Positions 33,285 to 54,796 are shown, counted from the whole stretch's first letter. The stretch: 63,674 bases of DNA, filler included, from Choristocarpus tenellus KU-1152 (GCA_964200185.2; 7 parts of 7 records of this genome joined end to end with filler, not necessarily neighbours in it); one strand, 5' to 3'. The notes: generated by a model not told the origin, from the letters alone. A program made the numbers and translations.

Positions 33285-33464
33285 GGCTCAATGTATCTGG
33301 GAGGGGGTGGTGGCTGTCCATCTGGGGTCAATTTTTTCATGTCGTGATTTTTGGGTGATTTGGTTGGATACATCGGATGGATACTGTAAATGTACTTTTC
33401 CTGATTTTGGTCCAAATGGACACCATGGCGTAGACCCCCCTCCCCCTCCCAGATACTTTGGGTC
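33285..33464. mobile_element. MITE family B copy 1 (no TSD)
   Basis: GGCTCAATGTATCTGGGAGGGGG...CCCCCTCCCAGATACTTTGGGTC; homologous to 48102-48285. Confidence 0.9.
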
Positions 33465-34239: not shown

Positions 34240-35049
34240 CTAAGCAAAATATGTGAAAAAATATTTGTACAAAATTCCACAGTGTTGCAATTTCCTCCCT
34301 AATTTCGCAATGTATGTAAATGTTAGGCGGAAACTCTTAGATGCACACATCCTAGACCACCAACCTCCCATGTGGTCGAGTGTGCACCAGGCTGGCGGGT
34401 TGTTTTGACGTAGCTGCAAACCTGATCCAACTTGAACTGCATTGCGGGCAGGTGAACAATCTGACTTTATCCAGGGAGGCATTCCGCCGTCCAGGGACAA
34501 CTTTCGTAGCTTGGGACTTGATGGGGAAAAGTCGCCAGTGAACGATCCCTTCCTCAATTCCATAATGTCTGTCTTCATTTCAGGAGGTTTGCAGGCCACA
34601 ACTGGCGCCCACGGTGGTGGACCTTCCAGAGATTGCCTCCTCCTTCTTGTGAAGCCAGCGTTCAGAGTACCCTCCAGAGAGACTTCTTTGGGGGAATCAA
34701 CAACTCTAGTGATGAGCGGTTTATCTGAGGTTGGCCTTGCCGTGATCCAGTCACTTGCTGGCGATGGGAAGGTGGGAGATTTCCATGCCACAGCAGAACC
34801 TAAAGCGTCTGGACCTCCACCCCATGCTATCCTGAGCCAGCCCAGACCACCAGTCAGAGAGTCTGGGACATTCTTCTTGTTATCAGCCTCCTTGATCCAT
34901 GCCAGTCGATCCTCAGACACTACATCCCTGTGTGCTGCAGACGCATCCTTATGATTCAACTCCACTGCTCCCAGAAAAGCATCCGAAAGTGAGGCCTTGT
35001 CTGTGCTTAGTTCCTGGGGTATAGCATGGACTGACCTTTTGAAGACTTC
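34240..35049 (-). CDS. W-repeat gene exon R (3' boundary uncertain)
   Basis: cctag|GAA, phase 0; LAW, GLGW, SDW, RRQSLEGPPPWAP, RKLSLDGGMPPW. Confidence 0.72.
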   Translation of the reverse strand, partial: EVFKRSVHAIPQELSTDKASLSDAFLGAVELNHKDASAAHRDVVSEDRLAWIKEADNKKNVPDSLTGGLGWLRIAWGGGPDALGSAVAWKSPTFPSPASDWITARPTSDKPLITRVVDSPKEVSLEGTLNAGFTRRRRQSLEGPPPWAPVVACKPPEMKTDIMELRKGSFTGDFSPSSPKLRKLSLDGGMPPWIKSDCSPARNAVQVGSGLQLRQNNPPAWCTLDHMGGWWSRMCASKSFRLTFTYIAKLGRKLQHCGILYKYFFTYFA

Positions 35050-38000
35050 CTAGGACTGTGACTATCTGGGCTAAAAAGTTAATCTCCAAAGTGGAAGTGA
35101 CATTGAAGCATGTTCAAACTTGTACGGAGTTCAAAAAAGTCACATATGAAATAAGAACTGATACCTACCAACTTGCTAGAAAATAAACCAAATTGCGCCC
35201 AGGCAGTGCATAGCTGCGTACACAGAGTTATGCAGACTGTTAGGAGGCGTGAATAAGGAAATATCGCAACCTGAACATCTGAATTGCCTATTGCTCTACA
35301 TTTCACTTCCTCACACAATGAACAGTCAATAAATTTGTACGCTATGTTCCCATTTTGACACCTTTATCTGGCCAGTCACAGGTAGAACATGCCCTGGGAG
35401 CATCCCAGCAACGGCAATCGGTTTTGGTGCCCATGGTGGAGATCCCTCTCCCAAACTAAGCCGTTGAGTTCCTGCAGCCGGTCTGAGAATAGTAGAGGGG
35501 ATGCAGTCATCGGAAGAATGGAAGTGCAGCCAAAACAGTAGTTCACCAATAGTGCCCAAGGGAGAAAATACAACAATGGAGTGAGAAAGTGCAGAGGAAA
35601 TGCAGTTCTTGAATTCAGTAATATAGTGCGGATGAGCTAGAATTAGGAAATTATTCATTTTTCTCCTGCAGCTTTGGCACATATTTTGTACTTGCAAATA
35701 TGTGCTTTGATACTGCTTGTGCAGAGTGAGTGGGGACACATTCCGGGTTCCTAGAGTAGGAGGGCTCAAGCCCTCTCTCACTGAACTTCAATGCCAGCAC
35801 AACCCTGACACAACCGACCCCTGCATCCATGCAGCTTAAGAACGATCCCCATATCTGTAAAATGTACTTTTAGATCGGTTTTGTGCAAATAAACGTTTCG
35901 CTTCATGTTGCTAGGTCACCCAATGCTTCACAATCAAGCTTTGAAGTGATACATATCTTTGAAATTTTTTGTATAAACATAGCAGCACTTCGATGAGTGG
36001 AGTTCTAGCCCTTTCTCAGTACCTGGCAATCTCCCCTGTCTGTTCTTGGTCCTGTCCCTCTTGAACAGCATCTGAAGCTCCAAGATTGTCTGATGCTAGA
36101 TATTGGGACAACCAACTAGCAGAGGGGTTTTCTGAATGGTTGGAGGCTCCATCCTCTTTTGCTTTACAAAGATTTGCCATCCACCTTGGAGGGGTACGGC
36201 CCACTTCCGGACACTTGGTGTTGCTTTTGGAGGGTTTTCCCAGACAACTGGAAGGAAATGTACTGTTCAATGTGTGGTGTTGAGCGACCGACTTGCTGTT
36301 TGACTCTGTAGGCTTAGATTTTCCAATAGCTTCGACCCAGTTCAATCCAACATCCACTGGACTTTCCCTGTCTTCATTTCTTCCACCAGGTTTACTCTTA
36401 TTGATCACCTGTGAGTGAAAGCATCTTAGAGGGTACAAGTTTTACCCTGTTTGTCCGTTACGGGCTTGGTTTCCCACCGGTTTTGATAACATTTTACTTA
36501 CTCCGAAATGTTTTGGAGTAGATAAAATGTGTACGTTATGAAAGGTGTGTCCTGAACAAGGATATTGACACTTCCTAACAAACATAGTCAAAATTTAATC
36601 AAAATCGCGACATTGGATTTTGACCCCAAACGGACGTGGTTCTACCCTCTGAGATACTTTGACTCTGTATCCATGCTAGCCCTCCCAACTCAGATATGTC
36701 TCTGCCAATGTCATTGGATGCTATTAGTAGTTTGGGTAAACTTGCTTCCTCAAATCCATTACATCCGACAACCCAGTCAAGCATATTGTAGGATCTTGTT
36801 GCCTAAGATCGCAGTAGGGAGGGGTCTATTGATTGTCAGTTTTTGCTCAGGTCCAAGAATGTGCACTTCGTTGCCCTTTCATAGTTTCCAACTTTGCACA
36901 CAAAGAGCACACTATTGTTGATATTATGCATAAGACAGGGTATAAGCCTCTATCTGTAGGAAGTCCATCGCATTGGAAGGTAGTGTTGACTACTTGCAGT
37001 AGTTGTTTGGCATAGTGATTCTTGTTGTAGGTTCTAGAACCTACCACAAACCACGAGTATCACACTGCTTTGAGGTACTAATACTAAGTAAGCTTTGGAC
37101 AGAAACAGCAGATTTGATACACTATACCCAACTCAATCTCTTCATGCCGAAGCCACACCACCCAAAACTACTGCGCAGCCTATCAGGCATTCCTTGTCTC
37201 GCCTTTCTCTCCCCTTCCTGCGGTACAGCATCACCCATCTCCAAGTTAGGTTCTTGAACAGGTTTTGGTGCCCATGGTGGGGGTCCTCCTTCTAGACTGG
37301 GGCGTCGTGTGGGGGAGCTGGAAACACATTTGTTGCTAACCCAAGGCTTGGCCGCCCATGGAGGGAGTTTGGTTCTTGATTGCATTGATTCAGATGACAA
37401 AACGGATCTGCAAGTTGTCAAATGATGGGGTTTTGGAGAAGACTGTAATATGGATTTCATTTATATTGACAGCTTGGTTTACCGCGGTTCAATTGCATGT
37501 GTGAGGTGGTTCATAGCAATGTAACCCCCAAATTGTTGTGATGCACTCCTCAGTTTTATTCTTAGGAAAGGGGTAAGTGTGGTGGCACCTGACAGCCTGC
37601 CTGTCCTGTTCTTGCTCTTGAATCTCTTGAACAGCATCAGGAGCACCAAGGCGATCAAATTTCAAAGCCTGTGAAAGCCAGTCACCAGATGATGGTGTGG
37701 TCAAATGATGGAGCGTTCCATGCTCCTCAGAGGAACAATGCCTTACCATCCAAGTTGGAGGGGTTCCCTTTGTTGCACTTCTCACTCCTATTCGACTCTC
37801 AACCCCTGTTGCCGTCTCCTCAATCCAAGCTAAAGAACCACTGGTGATAATTTTTTGGGATTGGGAAAAAGAAATACAGCAATCCCTTACACCTTTGGGG
37901 TTACAAGCAGCTTTGATCCAATCTAGCCCTTCATCAGCAGGGTTTGCATCGAGGCCCGCATCCGTATTATTGGAGATGACCTTGGCTGAATATCGTGTCC

Positions 38001-41000
38001 AAGTCAACCCTCCCTCGTTAGAAGCATCATCCTTTTTTTTAGATACTGGCATTGGACTGGGTGGACTACCTAGTTCAGATTTCTTCACACAACTGATCCA
38101 ATCTGGCAAGTCAGATGCTGGTGTATCCTGTGGCAGAAGCAACGGTCAAGTGGTGGGTGGAACGGAGGTTGAGGAGAAATTGCAACAATAGCCACTCTGT
38201 ACTGTAAACCATCATACGCTCACCATAGAAATATTATCTCGTGCCCTGTCAGTCTTTCCACGGTTGCAGATCTTAGAATTATGATGGCATTGGTGAGAAT
38301 CGGACACTATTTCATACCTAGGGCCTATATAGTTATATTCAAATGGGTTATGATAATGCTACATACTTCAAACTATTCAGAGTAGTACACACACAGACAC
38401 ACATCCATAATCACAATGCATAGTATATCCGAGGATCAAGCATCAACAATACACACAGGCAGAATGAACACTTAGCACCCATCAGAACTCAGATTGTGTT
38501 GGAAGTCGCCAGGAGGATAATGTGCTGTATCGATAGTCACTTCCTCAAGTTCACCTGCTCAGATTGTTGTTCAATGTTTACTCTGCCCACACTGGAAGAT
38601 TGAGTAGGATTTGGTGCCCAACCTGGACGCCCCCCTCCAAGGCTAAGGCGCCGGGCAGTGGCTGAACTAGGAATATTGTTGATGCCTGTCCAAGGCTTTG
38701 CAGCCCTTGGTGGGAACTCAGACCTTGATTGCGTGGATCCATTTAATGTGTTGAGCCTACGCACAATTATATAGAGCATGTGCAGGAGGATTCTTGACTA
38801 TGGCCAACATTTTCGTATAACTGTACCTAATTCAATTCAATATACGCAGTAAACGGAGATAGGTAGTGTTGCTATTCAAAATCGTTTATGAGTACAAATC
38901 TAATTAACTCAGAATTTCTTGTTGTACTCAATTATAATGAAAACATGCACACATCACACATATTGTGGCATGCGAATTGTTGCGATCCGCGAGTATATTG
39001 TACACCGCGCATTTGCGCGAAAATGAACTATCAAAAGTATCCCACCTCAATTTTCGGTTTGGATTATTCGCAATTAAATTACATTGTAGTGATTGAATCG
39101 CTTCAACACACAATTATAGAGATGAAGGATTTATCACTCTCTACTCCTATGCCTGACCTGGCAAAGATTGGTGTTGTCACACTTTCCCCCACCTGACAGC
39201 CTGTCTGTCCTGTTCTTGCTCTTGAATCTCTCCGACAGCATCAGGAGCACCAAGGTGACCTGATGCTATGACACGGGACAGCCATTCACAAGATGAGGGT
39301 TTGGTAGAAGAATTGGTAGATTCACCTACCACAGAGGAAGAACATCCTCCCATCCACATTAGAGGGGTTCCTCCGCATGCAGTACCTGTTTCTATGCACT
39401 TTGTCTTCCCATTTATCTTGACAATCTCTTCAAGACTAGTTGAAGGACTTTTGGGGGCAATTGTGCTAGACAGAGATGCAGACATGGGATTACCATCGCT
39501 GCGCTTAGGTTTACTGGCATTTGCTATCCAATCTAGTTCATTATCAGCTAAACTCGAATTTCCATTGCCAGTTAGTCCGATCTGGGCATCTTCAATCTCT
39601 TGTATCCAACCCAGTCCCTTTTGCTGAGAAACTTTGCAATCTTCCCAATGTGAGATTGTCCTGTCCCAGCCCACATCCCCATTCTTGACTTTACTGGCCA
39701 CAAGCACCCATTCCAGTCCTCCCCCCTCAGAAACCCCGTTCTCATTGCAAATATATGTCGGTATGTGCATGGGTGGATTACCCGACCCAGACCCCAACCC
39801 AGAAGCGATGCAGTCTGGCGTTTGGGACACAAGTGCCTGTAGGTGGGGAGGGTGGAGTCAGGATTGATGAAGAGTTTAGGGCCGAGCCTCCAGAGCATGA
39901 ATGATGAGCAGGATAGTTCAAATCTAATTACGATCAGCATGTACCTTTTTTATGTGGACAACACATATGGAGTCCCAATGTTTTTTCAGTAGGCCTCATA
40001 CTATTGCTGGCATTTAATATAGTACAAGGAGTACGCAAAATACTTTTCATGTCATTCCTACACACATAGACGTGCATGAATTTACAAGCAGGTTAAGCAA
40101 ATATTCAATCGCCTCAATCGACTTTCACCCCAGTTCAGCTTTGCACCACTACAGGCAACTCTGTGAGACCATGTGCACAACATCACCTTTATTTGGTTGG
40201 TTTGTGTTTCAACACCTCCTGGTTCCACCCGTGGATCTTGACTAGGCTGCGGTGCCCAAGCTGGAAGACCTCCTCCAAGGCTAGGGCAACGGGAAGATGT
40301 GAGACTAGCATTGTTTGTGGCTACCCATGACTTTGCCGCCCATGGAGGGAGCTTAATCTGTTGTGCTGTATATGCAGAAGCTGGATCGAGCCTGTATGTG
40401 GTGTGATGGGGTTATTGAGGAGGACTTGCCAAGGGCGGCATAGCAACCCTTCCCACGAACTGTTTTTCAAGCCTTACCTCAGAACATGCTCCTTTCATGG
40501 TTTGAGATACAATATTATGCAAGTGGCATAATCAAACATGCTCTCCCATCTATCTAATATTCTCAGTAGGCGGCATTAAATTCTTTTACCATCACCTGGC
40601 AGATTGGCGGTCTTGCTTTTGCTCCTGCAACTCACGGATAGCTTCAGGGGAGCCAAGATTACCTGATGCCACAGATTGAGACAACCAGCAACCCGGCAAC
40701 GGTTTAGCTGAAGGGCGGAAGTCTCCATCTTCCTGAGAGGAAGAGTAGCTCATCATCCATTCTGGATGTGTGTGCACAGGTGCTTGCTTCACCCTAGCTC
40801 GCTTAGCTGTCCTTCTGGCAGTCTCCTCCAGCCAAGTTAACTGACAATTAACAGAGCCATCTCCTTCAGCTATGTCATGACTTGCTTGGGATGCTGATGG
40901 AGCACACACGCTCCATTTCGTGCCATTTTCAGTCTCTCTTACAACTTGCTCAAGCCAAGTTGGGCCATCCTTGGTGACTGCAGTGAGTGAGGCTGTAGTG

Positions 41001-44000
41001 GTAGGAGATTAGGGCGTTGTCAGTCAGCTGATCTCACGAGAAGGAATGGAAGGGAGTGAGACATAGTCAAATAGATATTATGTTAGGTCAGCTTACACAA
41101 TGTCTTCCTTTGCCTCTGAGTAGAGGTAATTGATCAGAAGTACTCCAAGATAACAAAATAGATAATATACTTCAGTAGGAAATTGTACCTCAAAGTGCTT
41201 GGAGGAGTATGTTTATGCTTTACAAATAGCATTTGGCCAACCGCATTTGTGGTAGAAGGGCCTTGTGAGAGACCTGGTATGGTGTATGAGAGCGTGTGAA
41301 AGGGAAACTACGGGAAAGATTCAACTTCAGTATAGTTTACGACTTCCCACAGTCTAGTGCCACACTTCGTAGATGTTGTGAAGCTGACTCATGAAAGGAT
41401 ATAATAGTTCTGGGACCAAGAGTAAAGGAATGCATGGTATTCCCTCCACACTGACTCTGTGATAACCAAATTGGTGCTGGCTATCTTGGTATTGTTACTC
41501 TGGGGGGGGATATCGTATGTTTAGGACGGTTGGAGCTGGGGGCATGTTAGAGGTCATGTTGTGTTCAGTTACGTGTTTATCATTTCCATATGGTTGGTCA
41601 TGATCATCCTCAGTCATTTATTCGGCACGTGTATGCTCTTGCTGCGACTGTCTAGCCCCCTACGAGTGAAATTATCTCAGAGGGTACGAGTTTTTCCCTG
41701 TTTGTCCATTTGGGATTTGAATTCCCATGGGTCATTTTAGGACATTTTCCTACTCCAAAATGTTTAGGAGTAGGTAAAATGTGTACATTATGAAAAGTTG
41801 TGTCCAGAACATGGACATTGACACTTCCTAACAAACACGATAGCCAAAATCACATCAAAACTGTAACATTGGATTTTGGTCCCCAATTGGACGTGACTCT
41901 ACCCTCTAAGATACTTTGGCTCCTACCTGTGATGAGCTGCTCACTAGGTGGAGTGTATATCAACTTGCCAGTCATTGATGGCAAGCGAGTCGGGGCCCAC
42001 GGTGGTAGGCCACTATCAAGACTTGGTCGACTCTTTGGGGTTTTGGTCACTGAGGAGGCTGTGACTGCCTCATGGTCTGGTACCTGGAGAGTGGTATCTC
42101 CGCTCAGGCTTAAGCACTCGGCAGATGAATCTCCAGCCATAGGAACAGGGAGAGGTGAAGATCCAGAGGCATAGATTGGTGCCCAGGGAGGAAAACGGAC
42201 AATCATATCGGTTTGCCTTTGTCCAATTCTGACCTGGGTAGTGCTGGTCTTTATGACTTCCAGACCATCACCCTGAGGGATCTGCCGTCCATCTGGATCG
42301 AGTTCCTCTTCTGACGAGGTATTGGTAGCAGGAACACGGGACAGGTCAGGAGAATTTATAGTAGCCCAAGGAAGAAAGCCTCCATCAAGGCTTGGTCGCC
42401 TTTGGGGTGTTTCAGTCAGGATGGCAGGAGTGTTGGTGGACTGCACACTTGGTGCCAAATGAGGAGCACCCTCATTAAGAGAGAGAGTCGTTCCTGTGAA
42501 GTGACATGAGCCGGATATAGTTCCCTTGAGTCAATAGCAAGGACAGAGGGTGAAAAGCTACGAACCAGGCTACAGTGCATTTTTGGATATGCCAAAACAA
42601 GCTTGTAATTCTACTGGTGGGTACTTGAAAATAGTGACCAGAGTGTTCTACTTCGAGTATATTGATTAGGCACTGTCTGTTGGGCAACATTGTGCAGCAA
42701 TAGACTAAAGCAATTGCTGAGACAAGACCTATAACCACATTTGTCAGACTTCATGAATTTTACCAGAATTTTTCCAAAAGTAATATATGTATTGGAGTTT
42801 ATAACTAAGACAAGGGGCTGAACTTAGCAAGGTCATGGCATGGACATGACTGAGGCAGGGTAGTAGAGAGTAGGATGATATGGGGCAGATATAGGACGAG
42901 AGGTGTGTGAAGTCTTGCTCACAGAAGTACCTGAACATCCTGTTGCCACCGCTCTAGGTGATAATTGGGTTGCATTGCTGCCACTTGTAATTGTGCAAAT
43001 TCTTAACCTGGTACAGAAGCAATTAAAGACAAAAAATAGGGGCAAAGGGAAGTGCATGGCTATTGATACACTCGGTGAAATACGAATCTGTGGCACCACA
43101 ACCCCTATCATCGCTGTCAAGATATATATGATCCAACTGCCAGAGCAAAGCTTAGTCAAATCGATCTCAACGTGATCCAAGTACAATATTTCTGTACTGC
43201 AGAAACAATGATAATGCTAACCTCATGTGAACATTACTGATAAAACACAGATTTGTGTTAAGTACAATGCATAAGTTTATGAGTGGACACCAACACATTT
43301 ATGGAGTCCTGAGACTTTATGTAAACTTCAAACACTTCCATCCACTCTGAGAGCCAAACCAATTGAGAGGTAGGCAGGTTTGAACCCTTTTGCATTCCAA
43401 GTCGTCTTTCTAATTCTGTGCAATAAACTCTATCTCATTCTCATTGCTTTATGTGGACATATTGCATACAAATTTATATTCCCCCTTTCTGCAAACAGAG
43501 TGACACCACCATTCAGCAAAGCTCATTCTGCACGTGTACAAAATGTCATATTTTTTCCCTTTGTCAGGATCCTCAAAATGCAACCCTGCCAACTTCTCAG
43601 TTGGTTTGGCTCTGACTACTTTCAACAAAGGCACTCATCAACTGTACAGAGTCATGTCTCCAATCTCTACAGTGAAGTGCACTTGATGACTACTTGTGAT
43701 TGAGATGCCTTGTCACGATATGAACTTTACAAATAGTCACCAGTAGCTCTTTGGCTCCTCAGGCTATGTCATACAGCAGTGGCAAAACCTTATCATTGAG
43801 AATGAACAAAGAGAATCAAGGTTGCCAAGTTGATAATGCTTCATCCCGATTTTTTCCCCTCAAACAACAGTGGTCTCTATATAGGAAAATAAAACTTGTC
43901 ACCACGATAAGCTCCAGTAGGACAGATGCTGATATTGTTGTGCTTTGCATGACTCTACAAGGCTTAAGTACTGGGTGTCACATCTTCTACAGAGAAAAGA

Positions 44001-47000
44001 CATTCTGTATGTATTGCCCAAGAAACGATTTACAAGATAGCTTTGGGGCAAAATTTTGACATGAAAACACGATTCTTTCCTCGCCACAGTTGTCCAGCCA
44101 GCCATAGAAAGTATGAACTCCAGTGCTTGTCTGAGTGTTGAGCTTTAGGCTCTAGTTTTTTTCTACTGAACTGCACTTGATCTCAAGTGCGGTGATACAC
44201 GTGGCCACCCATCGTTTCTTGCAATGCAATCGGGTTTATTGAAATTCTCACCTTGGTGCAGAACAAAAACGCTACATGGCAGTTTGTGTTTAGTACAATG
44301 CAGATGTCGCTCTCCAAGGACAGCTATGAGTTGCAGCCCAAGAAAATTAGAAGGGTACTACAAAAAATTCCAAGACGAAAATATGAGATGAACAACTGGA
44401 TGCCCTGCCAAGCAGGGACACATTGCTACTTCACCCAAGAGTTTGATCTCAATATTGGTGATGAAGCAATATTTCAACGTTTTTGCAGGAGAAGAATGGT
44501 AATGTTTTCATATTTTAGTTCTCATCCAGTAGAAAACAACAATGTGTGGAACCCTATGTAGAGCGCAATAGTTGTCTCTACATTTGTTTCTCTCAATTGA
44601 TATGATACTGTGTATGAAAGTAAGCTTCGTCACTGTTGGGTCTAAAACACATGAAGGACTTAAACCGCAGAGAACAATATCTTGTACCAGTACCACATAC
44701 CCATTCACGATGTGTCTGTACAGTCATTGTCTCTGTCCAAGGCCATGATCCAGTACCAGGTTTGTACTAAACTCAATGGACCCAGGGAGGTTCCAGTATG
44801 CAAAGCCGATCCCAACATACCATGTTCTCTATAGTGCAGACTGCCTACATGCAATACTCTGTCAAGTGATATTTGCCAACAGGAGATGCAACGACTGAGC
44901 TCACAGCAGTCCACAGGGAGGGCAGAGGCTTGAGTCCGTCATTGACTAAGGAAGTTCCTTCCCATGAGCCACTGTACTCTTGTTTTGGTCCTTCCCTCAA
45001 AGAAAATTCCTTAGGCAACAACATTGATCTGCAGGCAGCTATGGCATTTGCCTTGTTTGGCAAGTGAAGGTGCTACTAACAGATCCAGGTTCCATTCATT
45101 GATTTGTACTCCATCACACATCCCTGGTGACCATAGATATCCGAAAGTCTTAATAGCGTTTGTTGTAGGCTCTGACCAGCTGTAAAAAAAATAGCTTGCA
45201 GAGTTTGAATGAACGAATTCATCAATACATTATACCAATACAGAATGTATCTGCATGGAACACACACACTCAAGAATGCTAAGGTATCAAGGGGGGAATA
45301 TATCGGAAATACAATTGAGGAAGGCTCCACTTGCATTATTCATCGATCTCATTATACAATATTGCTGCCATTGGATGCTAAACTTGTGTTCAAGACTTTC
45401 ACATCCTTGGTGCTGGCCGCCCCTACTATGATCATAACCTACGGTACCTCAGTCAATGTCCCCCTGCTGCAGCCTCTGAGAGATGCTGAGTAAAAATAAT
45501 GTGAAACACGTGAGTCTGTGCTCACAAGGAAGAATATAGTGTCAGAACGAATATGCAGATCTCTACAGTTACTCCAAAAAGGAGCCAGGTGCCTCAAACT
45601 GGAGCATTTCCTATTCAACATGATATTGTGTACTCTATCTAGACAACTTGGAGCATAAGCACGTCCTACAGGAAATTTGGGCCCCTCACACTCAAAGTAA
45701 AAAATCTTGTACTGACTTCATACCAAAAAACTTCAACGTGTAGGAATCAGCATTGGCATTGTTCTGCATGTGGGGATATGTAAGCATCATCATGTTAGGT
45801 CCAAAAGAACGACAATCAATAGATGATATCCTGCTTATCTCATCTCCTCAGTCCTCCCACCCCACAACTGAGATTCTACAGGGTGGCAGCAGTAGCGATC
45901 ACTTATCTGGACAGCACAAACGTTCAACTACACCTTTGCCTCATCTGATCCCTAAACATCTCTCCACAGAGCTCTATCCCCTTCCTTACCCCATGGGCTC
46001 CACATTCACCTGAGATGAGAAGGGGTGGACCAGGGTTCCTCTAGAACGCATTCCTTGGAGAGAGTCGAACCAAACATCCATGAAGCTGTTGCTTGTTCCT
46101 GGAGACCCCCACCATGGGATGGGCCTTTGCTCTGCACCTGTGAGACTAGATGCACGTCACTCTGCTTGTCATCCAGTGATGATAGGCTCATCTTTTTCTT
46201 CCTCAACAAAGGGGTGGAAGCTGCAGCAAGGCATGGGATTTCCATCATGCCCGCAGCCTTGAGAGTTTGATCCTGATCTGGTCCTCTTCTCTTCCCAGAC
46301 TCCGCAGCTGCTTTGTGGAGCCAATCATGCCCACCTGGGTTGTGAAGGAGAAGGGCATTATGACTGATGGAATTATATGATGAGCATGTGAGTGAAAGTA
46401 TCTTAGAGGGTACGAATTTTGCCCTATTTTTCCATTTGGGGCTTGACTTCCCACGGTTTTTTATGGCATTTTCCTACTCTGAAATGTTTTGAAGTAGGCA
46501 AAATGTATACGTTATGAAAAGGTGTGTCTGGAACAAGGATATTGACACTTCCTAGCAAACACAATAGCCAAAATTACTTCAAAATCGCAACATTGGATTT
46601 TGGTCCCCAAAACGTACGCGGCTCTACCCTCTAAGATACTTTGACTCTGTGCTTCGAGTATACCAGGACATCACCTGATAATGAAGTAAACGACTTAAAT
46701 GAAAAAAGGGAAAACATAGAATATCTAGAATATTTTGCAGCTAATAGTGGGAAACATCACTTCAGGGACTAGAAACAGAGGTGGAGTATCGACATATAAT
46801 GGTCTATTCTCCAAAAACTGGACTCAAGCAAAGCTACTGCAGTATCCTTGAAGACGGACTGTAATTTCAGCCCAGGAGATATCCCAAGACAGTTATTCCA
46901 AGAGTGAGTACAAGAAGAGAACATTTTCCAAGTAGATGAGTTTGTACGTACTTGATGGATGGATCTTTGCCAGACTAAGAAGTGAGATAGGTAGAATGTG

Positions 47001-50000
47001 ACTGAATATTACTGAGGATTGCATTGGTTCATACCACTATAGAGTTTCTACACAAAAACGAATAGGCAGTATGAAGCCCTTGCCCTGGAGAGAGGTGTCA
47101 GGAATATTCAATTCCAAATACGCTTTGCAATCAATATATGAAATTTTGTGATGCACTATATGTTGTGCAGAAGCATCCCCATACAACATTTGGGAGGATA
47201 TCACCTTGCACATGCCCATGTGCGTACCCCCTACTCTAGCTGCGCCGAGGAGCACTCTGTTCTTCTTAGCACTGCAATTATCTGACAACCCGAAATGTTA
47301 GAAATCAATCATGTTGACCTGATGTAGTACTGAACTCCTTGCAACAATGGTGTCTAGTTCAAGATGGATTTTCTGTTTGCGTAACGTACTAAGAATTTCT
47401 GCAAAGCTGTTGCTATCAGCATAATTGTGACAGTTGGCTTTTGGCCCTTCACCACTGTAATTGTTGGAGGTATGTATGATAAATGTTCAACCACATTTCA
47501 GTTAAGGAAATCAAAATGGGATATAAACTATTTTTGTCTAGTGGACAAGTTTTTTCCTGGTATTTGTTACAAGTATGGAGACAAGGAGACCTCAACAGGG
47601 TCAACAACCTGGAGAATGACTCCCAACAGAATAACTCTTCACGTCTCATAAATTTCAAACTTCTTAGGGTAAGGGAAGGTTAAGGGTTAGAGTTGACGTT
47701 AGGGTTAACAAGAGGGGTAGGGGCATGGATAAGTGTTGGATAAAATGAATGAATTTGTGTTCTTTTTTCTCTTCACAACAAGGATAAGAAATAGATACAA
47801 AGAAATTGGGAGTATTGCTCATGTCACTGATGCAACAGCTTATTGTCCATCTATACCCAGTGCAGATAGGTTTCTCTATGTGTGGTATGTCACTGGACTG
47901 AAACTGGGATTTGAACTCCTTCCTGTTGTATGTAGAACTCAAAGAATGGAAAAAAAAATAGCATACTTCTGCTTGCATTGACTTGCCTATATTTTCTTGC
48001 CTAGGGAAAAGCACAAATATCTAGTCATAGTGAGCACCTGTATCACGAAGAAAGATTGATCAGGACCTTTTGAGTATAAGGAGAAATAAAGTTTTCTGTG
48101 TGGCTCAAAGTATCTCGGGGGGAGGGGGGGTGGCGGCTGTCCATTTGGGATCAATTTTTTCATATCGTGATTTTTGGGTGATTTGATTCGATAGGTTGGA
48201 TGGATAATGTAAATGCACTTTTCCTGATTTTAGTCAAATGGACACCCTGATGTAGACCCCCCCCCTTCCCCAGATATTTTGGGTCTGTGGTACCCCAATT
48301 CCCCTGCCCGAAATGCAGCTAACCTACATCATTATGTTGTGACTGTAGAAGAGGAGACAATAGGTCGTCCACCAAAGCAAGGATTTGACCCTCCACAGTG
48401 TTAGGAGTGTATGTACCAGAAGGAAGTTCCAGGGGCCCCTTATACTCAGTGGCCCCCCTCAAGGAAATTACAGCTCAGTACCAGCAAATACACTCCTTGT
48501 GGATCCTCAAGTTGATAGCATTACATACCACTCAACTTGTACATTGGGCATGTATGATGTATTGATGCGATTTGTTGTCAACGCAGAGTTCATATAACCA
48601 GACACAGCTATAATCCGTGCACATCGTCTATATTGGTGCTCATACCAACAGGCAGTTCTTTTACTGTAGAAGTGTTTCAATCATGGGTAATCTCATTCGT
48701 GCTATATAATACATGCTTAGGAATTAACCAGGTGGAACAAGAGGTCTACATCACATGCACTCAGTAGTTCATAGTATCTTGTAGTGCAGATTATGTGTAC
48801 CATATGTATCGCAGCTTGCTCCTCTGTGTACGCAAGAAAACTAATATCCTTAAATAGAGAGCATTCGCATATTCTAGATTTTCATGATTCTAAAGATAGG
48901 AAGGAACGTAGGCCTATGCAAACGATGTATTCGATCATATTAATCTCAAATACAAAATGTATCACTAATACACAGTACTCGAAGCATGATGGAGATTGTG
49001 GTATGCCTCTACTCACAGCAAGAAGTTCTGAGCCAAAGTCTTTACTAGCACTTCACAATTTATTAGGAAATACAATCTGGTGTCTACGGATCCAATTACC
49101 CCAACCAGTAGACTACCTCACCTTGGATACTGTTAATCGTGGGTCCAACTTCTGTCCGAGATGCAACCTGATTAACCCAGTCAAGACTCGTTACTTCCAT
49201 GGCACATTTCCCTTTATAGATCCCATCTCTTCCTCTATGGATGCTGCTCGCTGCAAAATTTGTCCCTGAGGCTAGAGATGATGCAGTGGCATCATTCTCC
49301 CTCCCATCCACAGTTGCAAGTCCCAATGCAGATGTGGATTCAGGCTGTGGGGTGGATGTGGGAATGGTCGAGAAGGCTGGCATCGGGACTGGAACAGAAC
49401 ACGTTTTAGCCCATGGTGGGAGCCGAGGCTTGGATGACGTTGCGGCATCAGGAGCAATACTTCCATCCCCAGTTTGTGTGCTCGCTGTTGCCGTCCTGGT
49501 CCCTGATTTTGAGCAAGAATCAGGTGCATCATCATCATCACTACCCTCTTCACCTGATGATACCCCAAGGCGGCCAGATGTTACTGCTGCTGCCATCCAT
49601 CCTCCTGGACTAGCTACCTTATCCCCTGCTCTTTCGTTCCCCATTCCGTATGGTGTGATCCGACCATCATCAGTATCTCTCCCGTATTGACAAGCAGTAC
49701 CCACAAGAACTTTATCAAATTTTGTGTTAACAGGGGCAACGAATCTCCCTGCAGTCAGCTGCCCACCAGATAAGGCCAGTAATTGAGATATCTCACCAAC
49801 CTTCACCCCCATGCAGAAACAGCAGCAGCAGCTCTTACTAACAGTGCAATTTTCATTTCCACTGGGCACTGTCGTATCCTCCATATTTCCAGAGGCAGAT
49901 CTTACACCTGTCACTAGCTGGTCTCTTGTGTCTCTTCCACCTCCTGCAGTACCCATGCCTGACAATTCAAATGGGAAGGAATGTGTCATTGGTGTATCAG

Positions 50001-53000
50001 CATTTGACATAATGTTTATGTCCTAAGAAGTGGTGATAGTAATGCAACCTCAAGGGGAAAAGACAATGGTAATAGTAGTAAAATCCAGGGTAGCACATTG
50101 GAAAACCTCTGAGGGCTTAGAGACACACCAGGGGCTCCAGTACATGAGTGTTGGAGACTCTTGAGTTCTTCATCCCTGCCTCCAGAATCCTTTGGAGATA
50201 TTTCACTGTACATAGGAATGGAAGCTTCCTGCCTCTTGAACTGTTGAACCAACATGGTCGGAAAGAACAGCGAGGTGAGCGATGTGGATTTTGGAGATAT
50301 CCATGTGCACGTTGAGTGGGAATCATTCAGTCTCACATGTAACCTCTACCAACACTTCCAAACAATGAACTGTCCTTCTGTAACTGCATTGAACACAAGA
50401 TCTTCATCAAAGCTAAATAACCGCACAGCAATGTTTCACATATGAAACAAATAGAAGCACAGAGTTAATCACTGTTCTTTGCTATCTGGTGGTAAGGCTT
50501 GTTTACTATTGTGTTATCTTCAATTGATCATATGAGTAACTTTCTATGTAGTCTGCAAAAGCCAAAATAGACCCCTCACCCCCTTTTCAGAAGCTGCTAA
50601 TGCCAACCAATCTGGAACGACCACAGCCCCTGCAGGTTTTTCTCCCTCCAGTCCAGAACCAACAGTCGTCACTTCTGAAGATAACCCCTTCCCTAAACCT
50701 GAGCTACTAATGCCCTCAGCCGTGTCTGTGGCAGCAGTTGATAGTGTTAGATCTGCAGAGGGTGGGGTTAGATCTGTTGGCTCTGACTTCGGTGCCCAAG
50801 GTGGTAGTCCTTTGTTTAGCTCACTCTCTTGCTGCATGGTTTCCTGTTTGATCCCCAGCGTGGGTGTAGCTTTGCAATGGCCATCCTTGACAGGTTGCTC
50901 CTTGGCCCAAACAGGCAAACCTCCAGAGAAGGAAGATCTATTGGATGTAGATTGTGTGGGTACAGGTGTGAGAGGCAATGGATCTGGCATATTTCCCATG
51001 TCTTCATCCTCACAGGGAGACCCAAGAGTGCCTGTGGCTACAGCCTGTGCAAGCCATCCACCAGGTGCCTTGATCTGATTATTGTTCATTTTCTCTATTG
51101 GGGCATCTGGTGCAGTAGAAGTGAAAGGGCCGGATAAAAATTGGGGGAGGTCATCTGTGAGGTGGAGGGAGAGTGAGAAGGGAAAGATGTGGAAAATAAT
51201 TTGGAAAAAAGAGGATTGCACACATAGTTTCTTGCTGCAGTAAGGTACTGAGAGAGAAGTGGAAAGAAAATCAACGATCTTTTGAGTTCCTGCAAAACCA
51301 ACAGATGGATAATGTCGATGTTCTTGAAAGTACTTTATCCTGAGACAACCCCAGATACTGGGGAGATCGTTCCCAAGGAGATAGCTCGCGTGTACCACCA
51401 ATATCCACACAATCACCTGTTGCACCCTCCTCCTCTCTTTCTCCATCCTCGACATCTGGTGGAGCTCCAAACTTTCCAGATGCTATGCATTGGGTCAGCC
51501 ACCCTCCTGGAACTACTGGTCGCGGTGGTTTCACTGTTGAAGATTTCTTAATAGTTGGCTGCTTCATACATACGCCAGCCAGAGATAGCCAATCCCTGTA
51601 AGTTGTCCCACCTGATCGCAGGCCAGTTGGAGAGACTCGGTGAGTGAAATTCTATTATTGAGCTGAAGAGTATTGCAGACGAGGAGACCAGCAAGGGAGT
51701 GGACCCCATCGACAGTTGACAACAGCGCAGTTGGGGTGGGCCAATGTGTTACCTGTCCAAACTTAGAGCAAGAGCTTTCAATTAAAAAAAGGGACATTGT
51801 GAGTACTAGTGAGTACTAGAATCGACTACTGAACACGAAAACACCACTGTAAATCATGATATAGTTTAGATATTCTGGCACCATGATACTATAGCCATCA
51901 GGCATTACGAACTCCTTTCACCTACGATGACTTGCAGATTGATATCACTGCTACTAGTGAACTGAATCATGAACAGAATAACGTCACCACTTGTAGTGCA
52001 AAATATACTCATTATATCTGACTTCAAATTGTCATCAGTTCTACTGCTTCAAACTATCAATTGTGCAACAATAGTACTTTAATCGTTGAGGTTTAATGTG
52101 ATGAGTCCAACACCTATTGCCAGTATTGCCGTCGTAGGTCAGTATCCCGAAGGAACAGGGGCACTACTAGTTTATCATGCAAAAAATAGTTTGCATAGGG
52201 TAATATGGTTAATGGAGTGGTATGCATCGAATGCAGGGAATGATAAATGGAGCAGAGCATTTGGCCAGGAAACTGCAGTGGAATGGACCTGTGGGTTACA
52301 ATTATCAGTTCCACACTCCAAACCCCTTAACAAGAAATGATTCTGAAGCCTTGTATGAGACCATTCACTGTGAGGGATTCCTGGTGAGAACTCTTAGAAG
52401 GGAAGGATAGTGGACTGGAAATCCCTTTGGAAGTTGGCAAGAGGGACTATTATCCACCATCTCTTAACTTACTAGCAGCACGAAAATATATCAAGAAGGG
52501 ATATCAAAATAGAAAATATATCAAGAAGGGATATCAAGAGATGGAAATGAAAGAAGATGAAATTTCTCTTTTCGCACAGGTTTGGTACATGCCCCATACC
52601 CCCCTCAGACATCTATCAGGGTCTATATTGGTTACCACTGATTTCTGACACCAGCTCCTTGTTCTCAGATACTGCTCGCTTCACCCAGTCAAGACCTCCC
52701 ATTCCCCCTGCTGGCTTCGTTTGGGCTGTCCCTTCACTGACCATCTGACCATCCTCAGCAGTGCTACCCCTTTCAAAGGCTGTTATCCAGTCCGGACTAG
52801 ACACGGCGGTTATAGCTTCAGGTGTTTGTACGGGGCTCAATTCGGGCTCTGGAGCTATTGCAGGGACCGGGCAAGGGTCTTGGTTTGGAACTGGGTCTGG
52901 GACTGGGTCAGCAGCAGGGATGGACCACAGCTTCGCCCATGGAGGAAACCTGGGCTTGGATGCTACTGAAGGAGTAGGTGTATCCTGTCTGTCCTCAGTC

Positions 53001-54796
53001 TGCGTGCCAACTGTACAATTCTTGGGATCCCGACCCCTGCCACTGCTTGAGGTGTCTTCGTCAGTATCTTCCTCCTCAACACACGGGAATCCAAGGCAAC
53101 CACTTGAAACTGCAACAGATAACCATCCCCCTGTTCCTTCAGTTTTTGTGGTTGTTTTTCCCTTCCCTACACCCCATTTGCTCTCCCCATTTGTCCCCCC
53201 CCCAGCCCTAGATCGTTTGTTCTCAATTTCACTGTTTTCTGTATTAGGGGCACCCAGGCGTCCGGCTGTCAGCCATCCACCAGGAGTGCTTGCGTTTTGG
53301 TGGTGTACACCTCTGCTACTATTCCCCTTATCATCGTTGCCAACTGCAACCATTGCACCATGTTGTCCTGAACGTATGACAGGATTAAGCCAACCCCCTA
53401 CCTTGCCTGTGGCAGAGGGATCCTTTGCCCTACATCTACTCCCAACAGCTCCCGCTGTCAGTCTATCCTTCCCACCAATTCCAAGTGCTGCTGTGGACAC
53501 CCAGCTGATACTGGCCTCTTTTGAGGCCGTGGTCAAGCATTCGTTCGATACTTGATCCACAATAGAGGCACCAATTCCATCCTTACTAGATGGGAGAGTG
53601 CTTGGTATATCAGAAGTCGTTGAGAAAGGCAAAGCATTGGCAGATTCTATTAATCCACACAACGGAGGTCCAGGAGGTTTGGCAATGGTGCGGGTTCCAC
53701 GTGCTATCTGCTGAAGCCAATCAAGTCTTTCAGCACTTCCTCCATCAGTACTCGAAAAATGTTCAACATGGGAAGGAGTGAAGGTCTCCTGCAAAAGTAG
53801 TAGGGTGGAAAGAGGAGTTGCAAGGATTGTACTATGCTTTGAAGCATGAAGAGAGGTGGTGGGTATGCTTGTTTGAGTGCTTGCTATGGCGTGAGAACAA
53901 CAAAACGATGTTTACCACTATCATAAGAAACGTATTTACCCAATCTTGGATCCTACAGGGTACATTTATGATGGGATCTGAGATTATCATGAAAAATATA
54001 GCTGCAATAGAATATAGATGCTGAAAATATTTGAGATCAATGGCTCCTCACTCTGTTCAAGAAAAAAAAACATTGTCCACCCTCAACTCGAGTTTATCTC
54101 AGAGAAATACTGGAGAATCTATGTAGTGTATCCAGCCAGGTCTTACCAACTCCAAGTCGTTACTTATCGCTTCCTGAAAAGATGGTTCCTGAGAACAAAT
54201 TTGTAGACTGCTTACATTCCCTGCAACTCATGGACAACATAGTACATTGAAATCAGTGACCTTTGAGTTGTTCCAACAAAATTTTGGGACAGAAAATATA
54301 CGCTCCTTGATCATTATTGTCCACCCTGACCTTGTGAGTTCACCAAACTGGTCAACCACCACCCCTTTCTGCCTATAAAATTTACTACTGAGAAGCAAGA
54401 AAGAACCTCACCACTTTACCGGATGCCACATCTGTTATCCAGTCTGGCACCAAGTGTACTTCTGGCAGTATACTGGGCTGATCTGATATCCCTAGGGGTG
54501 GATGTTCCTCCAGACCACTGTCCCTGGTGCTCAAGGCGTTGGTGTCCTCCAAGGCTGAGGTATTGGCAGTTGATGGAGTCACTGGCTGTGCAGACGCTGG
54601 CTTAGGGGCCCAGGGCGGTAGCCCAGAAGATATTCCTCCCCCTTGCTCCATTGATTGCTTAGGGGCCCAAGGTGGCAGACCATCAGAGAAGGAAGACCTT
54701 CTGGGTTGATGTTCTACTATTGAAGGGGTGACTGAGCTGAACGATGGCCTGGCTGCATCACCTTCTTCATCCTCATTCTCACACGGAGCCCCAAGG
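34240..54796 (-). CDS. Giant multi-exon gene for an uncharacterised disordered Trp-motif repeat protein (5' end beyond the contig break)
   Basis: Sixteen stop-free exons with splice sites and matching phases, except at one junction. Recurrent GGWL, GLDW, PDW, LGAP and RRxSL-GG-LPPWAPKP motifs. Confidence 0.8.
35362..36802 (-). CDS. W-repeat module 4: exon 36802-36023 (split by a MITE) and exon 35482-35362
   Basis: Removing the MITE plus one TSD restores ELGGLAWIQVINK in frame; short exon QRLSLGEGSPPWAPKP..IK|gt. Confidence 0.7.
36413..36665. mobile_element. MITE family A copy 6, TSD TGT, inserted within a coding exon
   Basis: tgt|GAGTGAAAGCATCTTAGAGGGTA...TACCCTCTGAGATACTTTGACTC|tgt. Confidence 0.92.
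37203..38127 (-). CDS. W-repeat module 3: exons 38127-37589 and 37407-37203 (probable GC donor)
   Basis: Phases 0-2 and 2-0; LGAPDAVQEIQEQEQDRQAVR; RRPSLEGGPPPWAPKP; AAG|gcgag. Confidence 0.78.
38555..39836 (-). CDS. W-repeat module 2: exons 39836-39193 and 38756-38555
   Basis: Phases 0-2 and 2-0; LGAPDAVGEIQEQEQDRQAVR; RRLSLGGGRPGWAPNP. Confidence 0.8.
40187..40992 (-). CDS. W-repeat module 1: exons 40992-40596 and 40391-40187
   Basis: Long exon ends LGSPEAIRELQEQKQDRQSA-AG|gt; short exon KLPPWAAKSW..RCPSLGGGLPAWAPQP..IK|gt. Confidence 0.78.
41664..41922. mobile_element. MITE family A copy 7, 4-bp TSD CTAC, at the exon I splice donor
   Basis: ctac|GAGTGAAATTATCTCAGAGGGTA...TACCCTCTAAGATACTTTGGCTC|ctac. 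Confidence 0.92.
41927..42493 (-). CDS. W-repeat gene exon I
   Basis: cttcacag|GA..RRPSLDGGFLPWA..RPSLDSGLPPWAP..G|gtagg; phase 1-1. Confidence 0.75.
46010..46334 (-). CDS. W-repeat gene exon G (downstream junction unresolved)
   Basis: cccag|GT GGG CAT GAT TGG (GGHDWLHKAA) ... AG|gtgaat; phase 1-2. Confidence 0.6.
46390..46647. mobile_element. MITE family A copy 8, TSD TGT
   Basis: tgt|GAGTGAAAGTATCTTAGAGGGTA...TACCCTCTAAGATACTTTGACTC|tgt. Confidence 0.92.
48102..48285. mobile_element. MITE family B copy 2, TSD TGT
   Basis: tgt|GGCTCAAAGTATCTCGGGG...CCCCAGATATTTTGGGTC|tgt. Confidence 0.9.
49122..50022 (-). CDS. W-repeat gene exon F (paralogue of exon B)
   Basis: cttag|GAC; 300 open codons; CAA G|gtgag donor. 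Confidence 0.8.
50580..51154 (-). CDS. W-repeat gene exon D (paralogue of exon A)
   Basis: ctcacag|AT..PGGWLAQAVATGTLGSP..GLPPWAPK..VPDWLALAASEKG|gtgag. Confidence 0.8.
51396..51611 (-). CDS. W-repeat gene exon C (boundaries less certain)
   Basis: cag|GT GGG..DWLSLAG..PGGWLTQCIASGKFGAP; phase 1-1. Confidence 0.6.
52636..53788 (-). CDS. W-repeat gene exon B
   Basis: tttgcag|GAG; 384 open codons; G|gtaacc donor, phase 1. Confidence 0.8.
54412..54796 (-). CDS. W-repeat gene exon A (partial)
   Basis: LGAPCENEDEE..RRSSFSDGLPPWAPK..VPDWITDVASGKV|gtgag, ends in phase 0. Confidence 0.75.

Follow-up and report, generated by a model that had tools for sequence, protein, structure and literature searches.

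A candidate gene for a giant disordered protein with tryptophan motifs in the brown alga Choristocarpus tenellus, and its unnamed relatives

The window, a stretch of 63,674 nucleotides in which seven parts of the Choristocarpus tenellus KU-1152 genome (GCA_964200185.2) are joined with filler, very probably holds a genuine protein-coding gene of an unnamed conserved family. The gene lies on the minus strand between 34.2 and 54.8 kb and has about 16 exons, which are joined by GT/AG sites with each donor phase matching the next acceptor. Its product is a very long disordered chain built by duplication of exon-sized modules, and each module carries short motifs around tryptophan. Taken together, the reading as a genuine gene of an unnamed family coding for a multivalent disordered scaffold, possibly zippered by the hub protein LC8, is the one that we favour, with some reserve. 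Parts of it go back to a sequence-only reading of the same DNA, made by a model, whose claims are taken up below with the results that bear on them.

Gene structure and conservation across relatives

The analysis was confined to the genomic part of the window from 27725 to 54796, with a G+C content of 40-52 %. Three frames per strand were screened with the regular expressions GGW[LMIV], xPxW[AMI], [GLP]x[DTE..]W[IVL] and SGx[LH]Gx[PS], which yielded 37 matches on the minus strand and 4 on the plus strand. The stop-free stretches bearing the motifs had lengths of 431, 312, 308, 269, 226, 226 and 218 codons, and identity in the internal alignments A1, A2 and A3 was concentrated on the motifs. 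Strand specificity, long open stretches and the focus of identity confirm that the Trp motifs pointed out in the sequence-only reading are real. The same reading had estimated about 2,500 spliced codons, and the exon chain comes close to this figure with about 2,350 codons for conservative boundaries and about 2,450 if exon E5 begins at 50022. It had to be corrected in that the gene is located on the minus strand and is truncated at 54796 by the edge of the piece. The first open stretch opens there in the middle of a motif ('LGAPCENEDEE'), thus the 5' truncation is due to the piece and not to biology. The exon boundaries should be taken as provisional, above all the donors of E2 and of exon B in the third tandem unit (B3).

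Exons were searched and folded individually, and their translations were pooled only for the counting of residues and motifs. The pooled translations had the richness noted before in Ser (11.5 %), Gly (8.8 %), Pro (8.4 %) and Thr (7.7 %) and contained few Cys, Tyr (0.6 %) and Phe (1.4 %). Tryptophan reached 2.85 % (67 in 2,347 residues) with a median spacing of 31.5.

Alignment A1 shows the 5' exons (54795-49123) as variations on a single module with the order PGGW[LM]xxAVxSGxLGxP, acidic run, ([RK]RSSFSGG)LPPWA[KP] and PDW/GLDW[IV]xxxAS. In the 3' half (41.0-35.3 kb) a two-exon unit is present four times in tandem, with a period of 1.4-1.8 kb and a DNA identity of 60-75 %, and a terminal exon related to it comes after the last copy. 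Exon A of the unit (alignment A2) shows two or three GLxW[IV], then TPPxWM and xWLSQxxASGxLGAPDAVQEIQEQEQDRQ, while exon B (alignment A3) shows KLPPWAAKPW and RRPSLxGGxPPWAPKP. The donor CAG/GT follows the same codon (...DRQAVR) in four of four exon A copies (40596, 39193, 37589 and 36023), and the exon B copies each open with one leading base (40391, 38756, 37407 and 35482). Tandem Repeats Finder reported no repeats, as divergence and period length of the coding repeats are both too great for it. The proportion of nonsynonymous differences (pN) was below that of synonymous differences (pS) in every paralogue pair, e.g. a pN of 0.40 against a pS of 0.52-0.67; this points only weakly to constraint, because the synonymous sites (dS) are mostly saturated.

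A profile of the window modules (A1) was compared with 1.84 billion (1.84e9) representative proteins. Among the 24 matches with E<1e-3, one was the window's own exon and 23 were exon-sized gene calls of 160-380 amino acids, all of which share the motifs and their order. A single relative is named in the databases, CAN0426434.1 ('unnamed protein product, partial') of the brown alga Discosporangium mesarthrocarpum; the other 22 are gene calls on Logan or ENA contigs without names or functional annotation. The shared motif order and the presence of one module per exon identify the 23 as true homologues. The sequence-only reading had taken the protein for lineage-specific, and relatives that are few and almost all unnamed agree with this. 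On three contigs of relatives (L001, L003 and L004) each module forms one open stretch in its own frame, 100-400 nt apart, therefore one module corresponds to one exon. These contigs share three exon types in a recurrent order: canonical, type C and PPWAP-repeat. The type C exon ends with GGWL..LGAPD (GGWLxxxSGxLGAPDAVxE) and a Glu/Gln-rich stretch. The cross-species consensus of the canonical exon (alignments A4, A5 and A8) starts with GGLxWLxxAAxG, ..ALSGxPI.., xDWLxxAAxG and GGWLxxGKLGVS with an acidic run, and continues with a Lys-rich stretch, PGGWLAAAVxSGxLGxPG with an acidic run, [VI]xTQT[DE]E, KPKLPPWAKPWxPP and GGLDWIxxA.

Within 30 aligned modules, 41 of 236 well-occupied columns were at least 70 % identical. 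All six Trp columns were conserved at 81-100 %, against an average of 33 % for the commonest residue in the remaining columns. Judged from these alignments, this is purifying selection on the W motifs. Conservation of the W motifs across relatives had been set beforehand as a test of the sequence-only reading, and its outcome speaks for the motifs as the selected elements. In the reciprocal direction, the family profile (from A4) gave 153 bits at 53338-52637 and 117 bits at 49770-49264 in the window; twelve minus-strand stretches were matched in all, ten of them more weakly, and none on the plus strand. Overall, the relatives are only 23-32 % identical to the window modules. Ordered motifs, one module per exon and the reciprocal profile search assign the window gene to the W-module family. 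It differs from its relatives in a lower number of canonical modules (two clear ones) and in an amplified tandem array of type-C/PPWAP exon pairs.

As had been stated on the basis of the sequence, the family is not a recognised one. Pfam searches with nine window open reading frames (ORFs), the 23 family members and six further exons gave only compositional noise (Trypan_PARP, DUF4653 at E=0.2), a PDB profile search had no match and the ESM Atlas no usable match. A word-index protein search retrieved nothing with the 392-amino-acid exon; with the family profile at least seven unnamed Logan fragments were among the matches listed. No mention of the motif strings was found in the searched literature.

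Two relatives provided a first exon rich in Arg, Gly, Pro and Met, with PRGRGPMMGPRG repeats and a PPCCPxC motif (contigs L001, 7655-8770, and L005, 1786-2748). The two first exons are weakly homologous to each other (BLASTP, E=2e-5), have no obvious signal peptide and continue into the first PPWAK motif. Such an Arg/Gly (RG)-rich exon suggests an N-terminus of the ribonucleoprotein (RNP) or methyl-arginine type. The window's counterpart lies beyond the edge of the piece. The relative on L005 (1786-4578; SRR16070415 and SRR16070416) has degenerate motifs, with KMPPGAKP replacing PPWAK and KLLRRAKPW, as well as a module enlarged by a long insert without motifs, and may represent a pseudogene or else a paralogue that is diverging.

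Predicted structure, TQT motifs and proposed mechanism

AlphaFold2 was applied to the largest exon of the window (E2) with a 28-row alignment and to one relative (P0017). The E2 model had a mean predicted local distance difference test score (pLDDT) of 55.3 and a predicted template modelling score (pTM) of 0.23. It contained only three helices of 7-9 residues, at LDWLQQIA, GGWLSVAVSS and LDWVKRAVS, and PPWAKLW attained a pLDDT of about 85 without regular structure. The relative was modelled with a pLDDT of 53.6, helices at LSWLKKA, PLAEAL, DWLVAA and WLAAAVT, and again a pLDDT of about 85 at PPWAKPW. Across both models the pTM was 0.23-0.24 and the helices comprised 6-9 residues. On these models, whose low mean pLDDT agrees with the disorder claimed before, the chain is best seen as a disordered one in which short recognition elements are already formed.

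Two motifs had been overlooked in the sequence-only reading. In every canonical module TQT[D/E] is located 17-27 residues before PPWAK, with TQW in a minority, and T and Q are conserved to at least 90 % in their columns of A4, A5 and A8. The window exons have four TQT, where about 0.7 are expected by composition, and the context before the anchor is V/I/T-rich and proline-free. LC8 binds disordered motifs of 8-10 residues that are anchored by TQT, with a preference for P/D/E at +2 and for proline-free, strand-prone residues before the anchor; it dimerises multivalent clients and zips them into duplex ladders (PMC6607443, PMC12057147). The family sites have the features of LC8-client motifs, namely a TQT anchor in a disordered segment, at least five non-proline residues on the N-terminal side and P/D/E at +2, and AlphaFold2 predicted no fold there. 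The other overlooked motif is [RK]RxS[LF]xGG directly before PPWAP in the second exon type. It is conserved across species and reads as a candidate basophilic-kinase consensus.

A canonical module starts with short predicted helices, two to four in number and each 6-9 residues long, that follow the pattern [G/D]-W-[LIV]-x-x-A-[AV]-x-[SG]-G. They occur as GGLxWL, xDWL, GGWLxxGKLG and PGGWLAAAVxSGxLGxP, and an acidic Ser/Asp/Glu run comes after each of the latter two. Next in order are TQT[D/E] in a strand-prone context, KPKLPPWAKPWxPP and GGLDWIxxA, and the second exon type contains repeats of [RK]RxS[LF]xGG[LM]PPWAP. In the mechanism that we propose, dozens of Trp 'stickers' about 30 residues apart could bind each other or a partner that is repeated or oligomeric, and the TQT sites could recruit LC8, whose dimer would hold two chains together in register like a zip. 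Phosphorylation at basophilic-kinase sites next to PPWAP and at CK2-like acidic clusters next to GGWL might tune the binding. Amplification has given this genome four tandem copies of the type-C/PPWAP exon pair plus a related terminal exon, and a transposon interrupts the fourth copy. For the components of this mechanism our confidence differs: multivalent docking via the Trp motifs is evenly poised, LC8 zippering is possible and rather doubtful, and phospho-regulation we infer only from the motifs.

Several observations weigh against the scaffold reading and its LC8 component. RNA runs for the organism were not found; the sole holders of the locus were two DNA contig sets identical to the window, and these are therefore without polymorphism or expression information. 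The 3' repeats are decaying, with a change of Trp to Arg in the exon B of unit 2 (B2), a loss of the first motif in B4 and an element resembling a miniature inverted-repeat transposable element (MITE) in exon A of unit 4 (A4). The disorder calls of AlphaFold2 rest on shallow alignments of 28-30 sequences. Only two TQT of the window are found at the canonical module position; two are elsewhere, one of these outside the preferred exon model. According to the anchor rule of LC8, position +1 is a buried mid-sized residue, and many TQT peptides do not bind LC8 (PMC6607443). Contrary to this rule, TQW replaces TQT in the modules of several relatives, therefore LC8 is not the only reason for the conservation of the TQT motif.

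Comparison with known systems and competing explanations

The main contexts of tryptophan were P-W-A (13), D-W-[ILV] (12) and G-W-L (6). By analogy, the nearest functional counterparts would be multivalent clients of LC8 (DYNLL) such as ASCIZ/ATMIN, Nup159, the KANK1 linker and GKAP, which carry repeated TQT-anchored motifs in long disordered chains (PMC6607443, PMC5963919, PMC12803091). The disordered chain with TQT anchors and D/E at +2 is common to both. In contrast to these clients, the family has one TQT per module of about 250 residues, with only 2-4 in the window, and the TQT is a minor part of a conserved pattern that consists mainly of Trp motifs not known from LC8 clients. The sticker-and-spacer scaffolds of the FUS family resemble the window product in the use of one dominant aromatic residue (W 2.85 %) about 30 residues apart within polar S/G/P/T spacers, and the RG-rich N-terminal exon of the relatives could supply Arg partners. 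Unlike in FUS-type scaffolds, the stickers lie inside strictly conserved multi-residue motifs and an RNA-binding domain is lacking; the strict conservation argues for specific docking over generic pi contacts.

The endocytic adaptors with DPW/WxxF motifs had been put forward as a parallel in the sequence-only reading. Eps15, epsin, AP180 and NECAP likewise have many short aromatic motifs in a disordered tail, which gain avidity for appendage domains. Membership in this group was not sustained, as DPW and FxDxF were absent and WxxF occurred once (0.95 expected), none of them above shuffle expectation. The PDW of the window is the reverse of DPW and belongs to a longer helical motif, DW[ILV]xxA. 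The product does not qualify as an FG-nucleoporin repeat protein (3 FG against 3.5 expected) nor, with no PGGG, as a microtubule-associated protein (MAP) of the Tau/MAP2 or EB1-binding type. The pattern [ST]x[IL]P was found 10 times against 4.2 expected, an excess that results from [ST]xLPPW in some copies. SxIP/EB1 was rejected as a candidate motif since the excess arises only via [ST]xLPPW and is absent from the cross-species consensus KPKLPPW. Motifs of the LC3-interacting region (LIR), W-acidic kinesin-light-chain, PPxY and EVH1 types were rejected as well, being at or below shuffle expectation or not conserved across species.

Four other explanations have to be weighed against a multivalent scaffold. 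Proteins that bind a polymer lattice, such as tau/MAP2 and MAP6/SAXO, typically carry short motifs at regular intervals along a long disordered chain. The window product has this architecture and might be a MAP-like binder of cytoskeletal or flagellar filaments, its W-helix modules binding one subunit of the lattice after another and LC8 linking it to dynein or radial-spoke-type assemblies. The TQT motif fits this explanation, and LC8 clients include ciliary and centrosomal proteins (PMC9481538). Against it stands the lack of PGGG, of a conserved SxIP and of an Mn-type motif, and we consider it unlikely. The Ser/Gly/Pro/Thr-rich composition with few Cys, Tyr and Phe and the repetitive, exon-modular architecture would also suit a secreted or cell-wall glycoprotein of the mucin type, in which the S/T/P linkers are O-glycosylated and the Trp motifs bind a polysaccharide such as alginate or fucan. 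Aromatic residues are typical for the stacking on carbohydrates, a point in favour of this idea. It is, nevertheless, highly improbable: the 5' exons of two relatives are RG/Pro-rich without a hydrophobic signal peptide (the window's own N-terminus is missing), the [RK]RxS sites, acidic CK2-like clusters and TQT are typical of cytosolic or nuclear regulation, and Pfam revealed no carbohydrate-binding family.

A decaying pseudogene or a non-functional repeat array, coding-like through recent duplication, would account for the MITE-like insertion with a downstream stop in exon A4, for the motifs lost in B2 and B4, for a gap of 6.6 kb without clear exons and for the failure to find an RNA run. 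The duplications are old, however (60-75 % DNA identity, dS saturated), yet frames are open over up to 431 codons and phases are compatible over 16 exons. Distant relatives with 25-32 % overall identity have kept the same motifs, and damage is at most confined to the last one or two tandem units, so that we give this explanation hardly any weight. GW182/TNRC6 and the plant WG/GW AGO-hook proteins, the other parallel drawn in the sequence-only reading, share with the window product Trp motifs in a long disordered Ser/Gly-rich chain. The product could be an AGO-hook protein whose GGW motifs dock in the Trp pockets of Argonaute; several GGW motifs in a disordered chain and the RG-rich N-terminal exon of the relatives, a common feature of RNP and silencing factors, agree with such a role. 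Known AGO hooks have flexible flanks that are small or acidic. Here, the Trp of GGW is followed by L-A-A-A-V, which was modelled as a helix, and most Trp are part of P-W-A or D-W-I. In the AlphaFold2 models the Trp residues are placed in short hydrophobic helices or PPW turns. GW/WG dipeptides were not enriched (14 against 12.4 ± 3.0 in 300 shuffles), and neither Ago_hook nor TNRC6 was matched in Pfam. None of the GW182 domains (Ago_hook, UBA, PAM2, RRM, silencing) was detected by Pfam in the window exons or the 23 family members, the 5' end of the window gene being missing. The parallel consequently fails as a statement of membership, and an AGO-hook protein is extremely unlikely.

Exon inventory, mobile elements and implications

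The exons and the TQT anchors are listed in Table 1 in the direction of transcription.

Table 1. Exons, splice sites and motifs of the candidate gene, with the two canonical TQT anchors
Feature	Position	Strand	Evidence and sites	Motifs and remarks
Exon E1	54415..54795	minus	open stretch, motifs; candidate donors 54420 or 54412; 5' side cut by edge	GGWL..SG.LGAP tail, acidic run, RRSSFSDGLPPWAPK, SSGLPPWAPKP, VPDWITDVASGK
Exon E2, largest, canonical module	52637..53788	minus	within 431-codon open stretch; 153-bit family-profile match 53338-52637; AlphaFold2 model; acceptor 53788 or 53883; donor uncertain, 52652 or 52636	ERLDWLQQIA, ISWVSTAALG, three GGWL, acidic run, TVGTQTED, KPRFPPWAKLW, SPDWITAF, GGLDWVKRAV
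TQT anchor of E2	53003..53011 (TQT at 53005)	minus		CTVGTQTEDRQ, 20 residues before FPPWAK
Exon E3, short	51418..51611	minus	profile match 51540-51415, 28 bits; donor CAG/GTGATT at 51417	YRDWLSLAG, PGGWLTQCIASGKFGAPPDVEDGEREEEG
Exon E4	50581..51106	minus	alignment, profile match; acceptor 51106; donor GGG/GTGAGG at 50580	PGGWLAQAVATGTLGSPCEDED, SSFSGGLPVWAKE, KGLPPWAPKS, VVPDWLALAASEKG
Exon E5, canonical module	49123..50022	minus	profile match 117 bits, 49770-49264; strong donor AAG/GTGAGG at 49122	degenerate first half (GGQLTAGRF replacing GGWLTAGKLG), then PGGWMAAAVTSGRLG, acidic run, ASTQTGD, KPRLPPWAKT, SLDWVNQVAS
TQT anchor of E5	49477..49485 (TQT at 49479)	minus		ATASTQTGDGS, same module position as E2 anchor
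Exon P3	41928..42493	minus	acceptor 42493 (lead 2) in phase with donor 49122 (leftover 1); donor 41927	three PPWA-type: RRPSLDGGFLPWAT, RFPPWAPI, SRPSLDSGLPPWAPT
Tandem unit 1, exon A	40597..40992	minus	alignments A2, A6; donor CAG/GT at 40596	GPTWLEQVV, LTWLEETA, HPEWMM, CWLSQSVASGNLGSPEAIRELQEQKQDRQ
Tandem unit 1, exon B	40188..40391	minus	alignment A3; splice sites	KLPPWAAKSW, CPSLGGGLPAWAPQP, VETQTNQIK
Tandem unit 2, exon A	39194..39836	minus	alignments, splice sites	GGLEWV, GLGWIQ, ELDWIA, TPLMWM, EWLSRVIASGHLGAPDAVGEIQEQEQDRQ
Tandem unit 2, exon B	38556..38756	minus	alignment, splice sites	FPPRAAKPW (Trp to Arg), RRLSLGGGRPGWAPNP
Tandem unit 3, exon A	37590..38127	minus	alignments, splice sites	LPDWIS, GGLTWT, GLDWIKAA, SLAWIEE, TPPTWM, DWLSQALKFDRLGAPDAVQEIQEQEQDRQ
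Tandem unit 3, exon B	37129..37407	minus	alignment, splice sites; donor uncertain	KLPPWAAKPW, RRPSLEGGPPPWAPKP
Tandem unit 4, exon A	36024..36802	minus	DNA alignment A7 against copies 2 and 3; 259-bp MITE-like insertion 36410-36668	upstream of insertion MLDWVV, GGLAWIQ; downstream GLNWVEA, TPPRWM, SWLSQYLASDNLGASDAVQEGQDQEQ
Tandem unit 4, exon B, shortened	35363..35482	minus	alignment, splice sites	RLSLGEGSPPWAPKP
Last exon, with stop codon	34240..35013	minus	ORF 34240-34965; open stretch 35049-34243; acceptor 35013	RLAWIKE, GGLGWLRIAWGGG, SDWITA, RRRQSLEGPPPWAP, KLSLDGGMPPWIK, NPPAWC, GGWWSR

Between E5 and P3 lies a putative intron of 6.6 kb (42.5-49.1 kb), which contains a MITE-like element; the interval may hide small or decayed exons. 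A weak match of the family profile within it (46252-46344, minus strand, E=0.5, GGHDWLHKAAAESGKRRGPDQDQ) adjoins the MITE-like copy and may be a decayed exon. The MITE-like element is dispersed, about 259 bp long and bordered by terminal inverted repeats of about 25 bp (GAGTGAAAGCATCTTAGAGGGTAC... and ...GTTCTACCCTCTGAGATACTTTGACTC). Three copies with 70-93 % identity were observed, at 36410-36668, 41661-41925 and 46387-46650. The first is inserted in the coding exon A4, where the frame is shifted by one and read-through stops at 36602, so that the fourth tandem unit counts as damaged.

About 0.9 kb downstream of the stop codon a decayed retroelement of the Copia type, a class with long terminal repeats (LTRs), occupies the plus strand (29693-33358). 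Its domains are gag (PF14223), a zinc knuckle, Pol_BBD, an integrase core (PF00665) and a reverse-transcriptase fragment; the reading frames are split over at least five ORFs, and an LTR pair was not detected. An assembly gap of 10 N lies upstream of this fragment, at about 28460. Small extra contigs of both DNA runs matched the window only in stretches of 18-25 nt encoding the SSFSGGLPPWAPK motif (50890-50907 and 54601-54678) and then diverged, thus further copies of the motif exist elsewhere in the genome. These copies could be upstream exons of the gene or paralogues.

In brown algae complex multicellularity arose independently, and a good part of the proteome lacks annotation. The family described here is invisible to Pfam and PDB and is present in protein databases almost only as exon-sized fragments. 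It is new to annotation, while its general kind, a scaffold with an array of short linear motifs (SLiMs), is already known. Gene models at such loci are systematically fragmented, and long-read cDNA is needed. Despite deep divergence the family has retained a strict set of such motifs. For SLiM biology it presents an unusually clean natural case, with invariant Trp, rapidly drifting linkers and one module per exon, and peptides of the W-helix, PPWAK and TQT motifs, e.g. GGWLAAAVTSGRLG, KPKLPPWAKPWTPP and GGLDWI, lend themselves to a search for partners. As a tentative and rather speculative view, it may be a hitherto undescribed family of hub proteins, giant and disordered, within the brown-algal lineage, in which Trp-helix ligands of a new class (W-[LIV]-x-x-A-A-x-G) and PPWAK turns, present in dozens of copies next to kinase sites, dock on an oligomeric partner and LC8, at the conserved TQT sites, zips two chains into a rod or ladder that organises a large assembly. 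Candidates for such an assembly would include an RNP granule, a structure of the flagellum or centrosome, and a scaffold of the cell cortex. If the binding of LC8 holds true, the 'disorder to rod' principle of multivalent LC8 clients would be extended to the stramenopiles.

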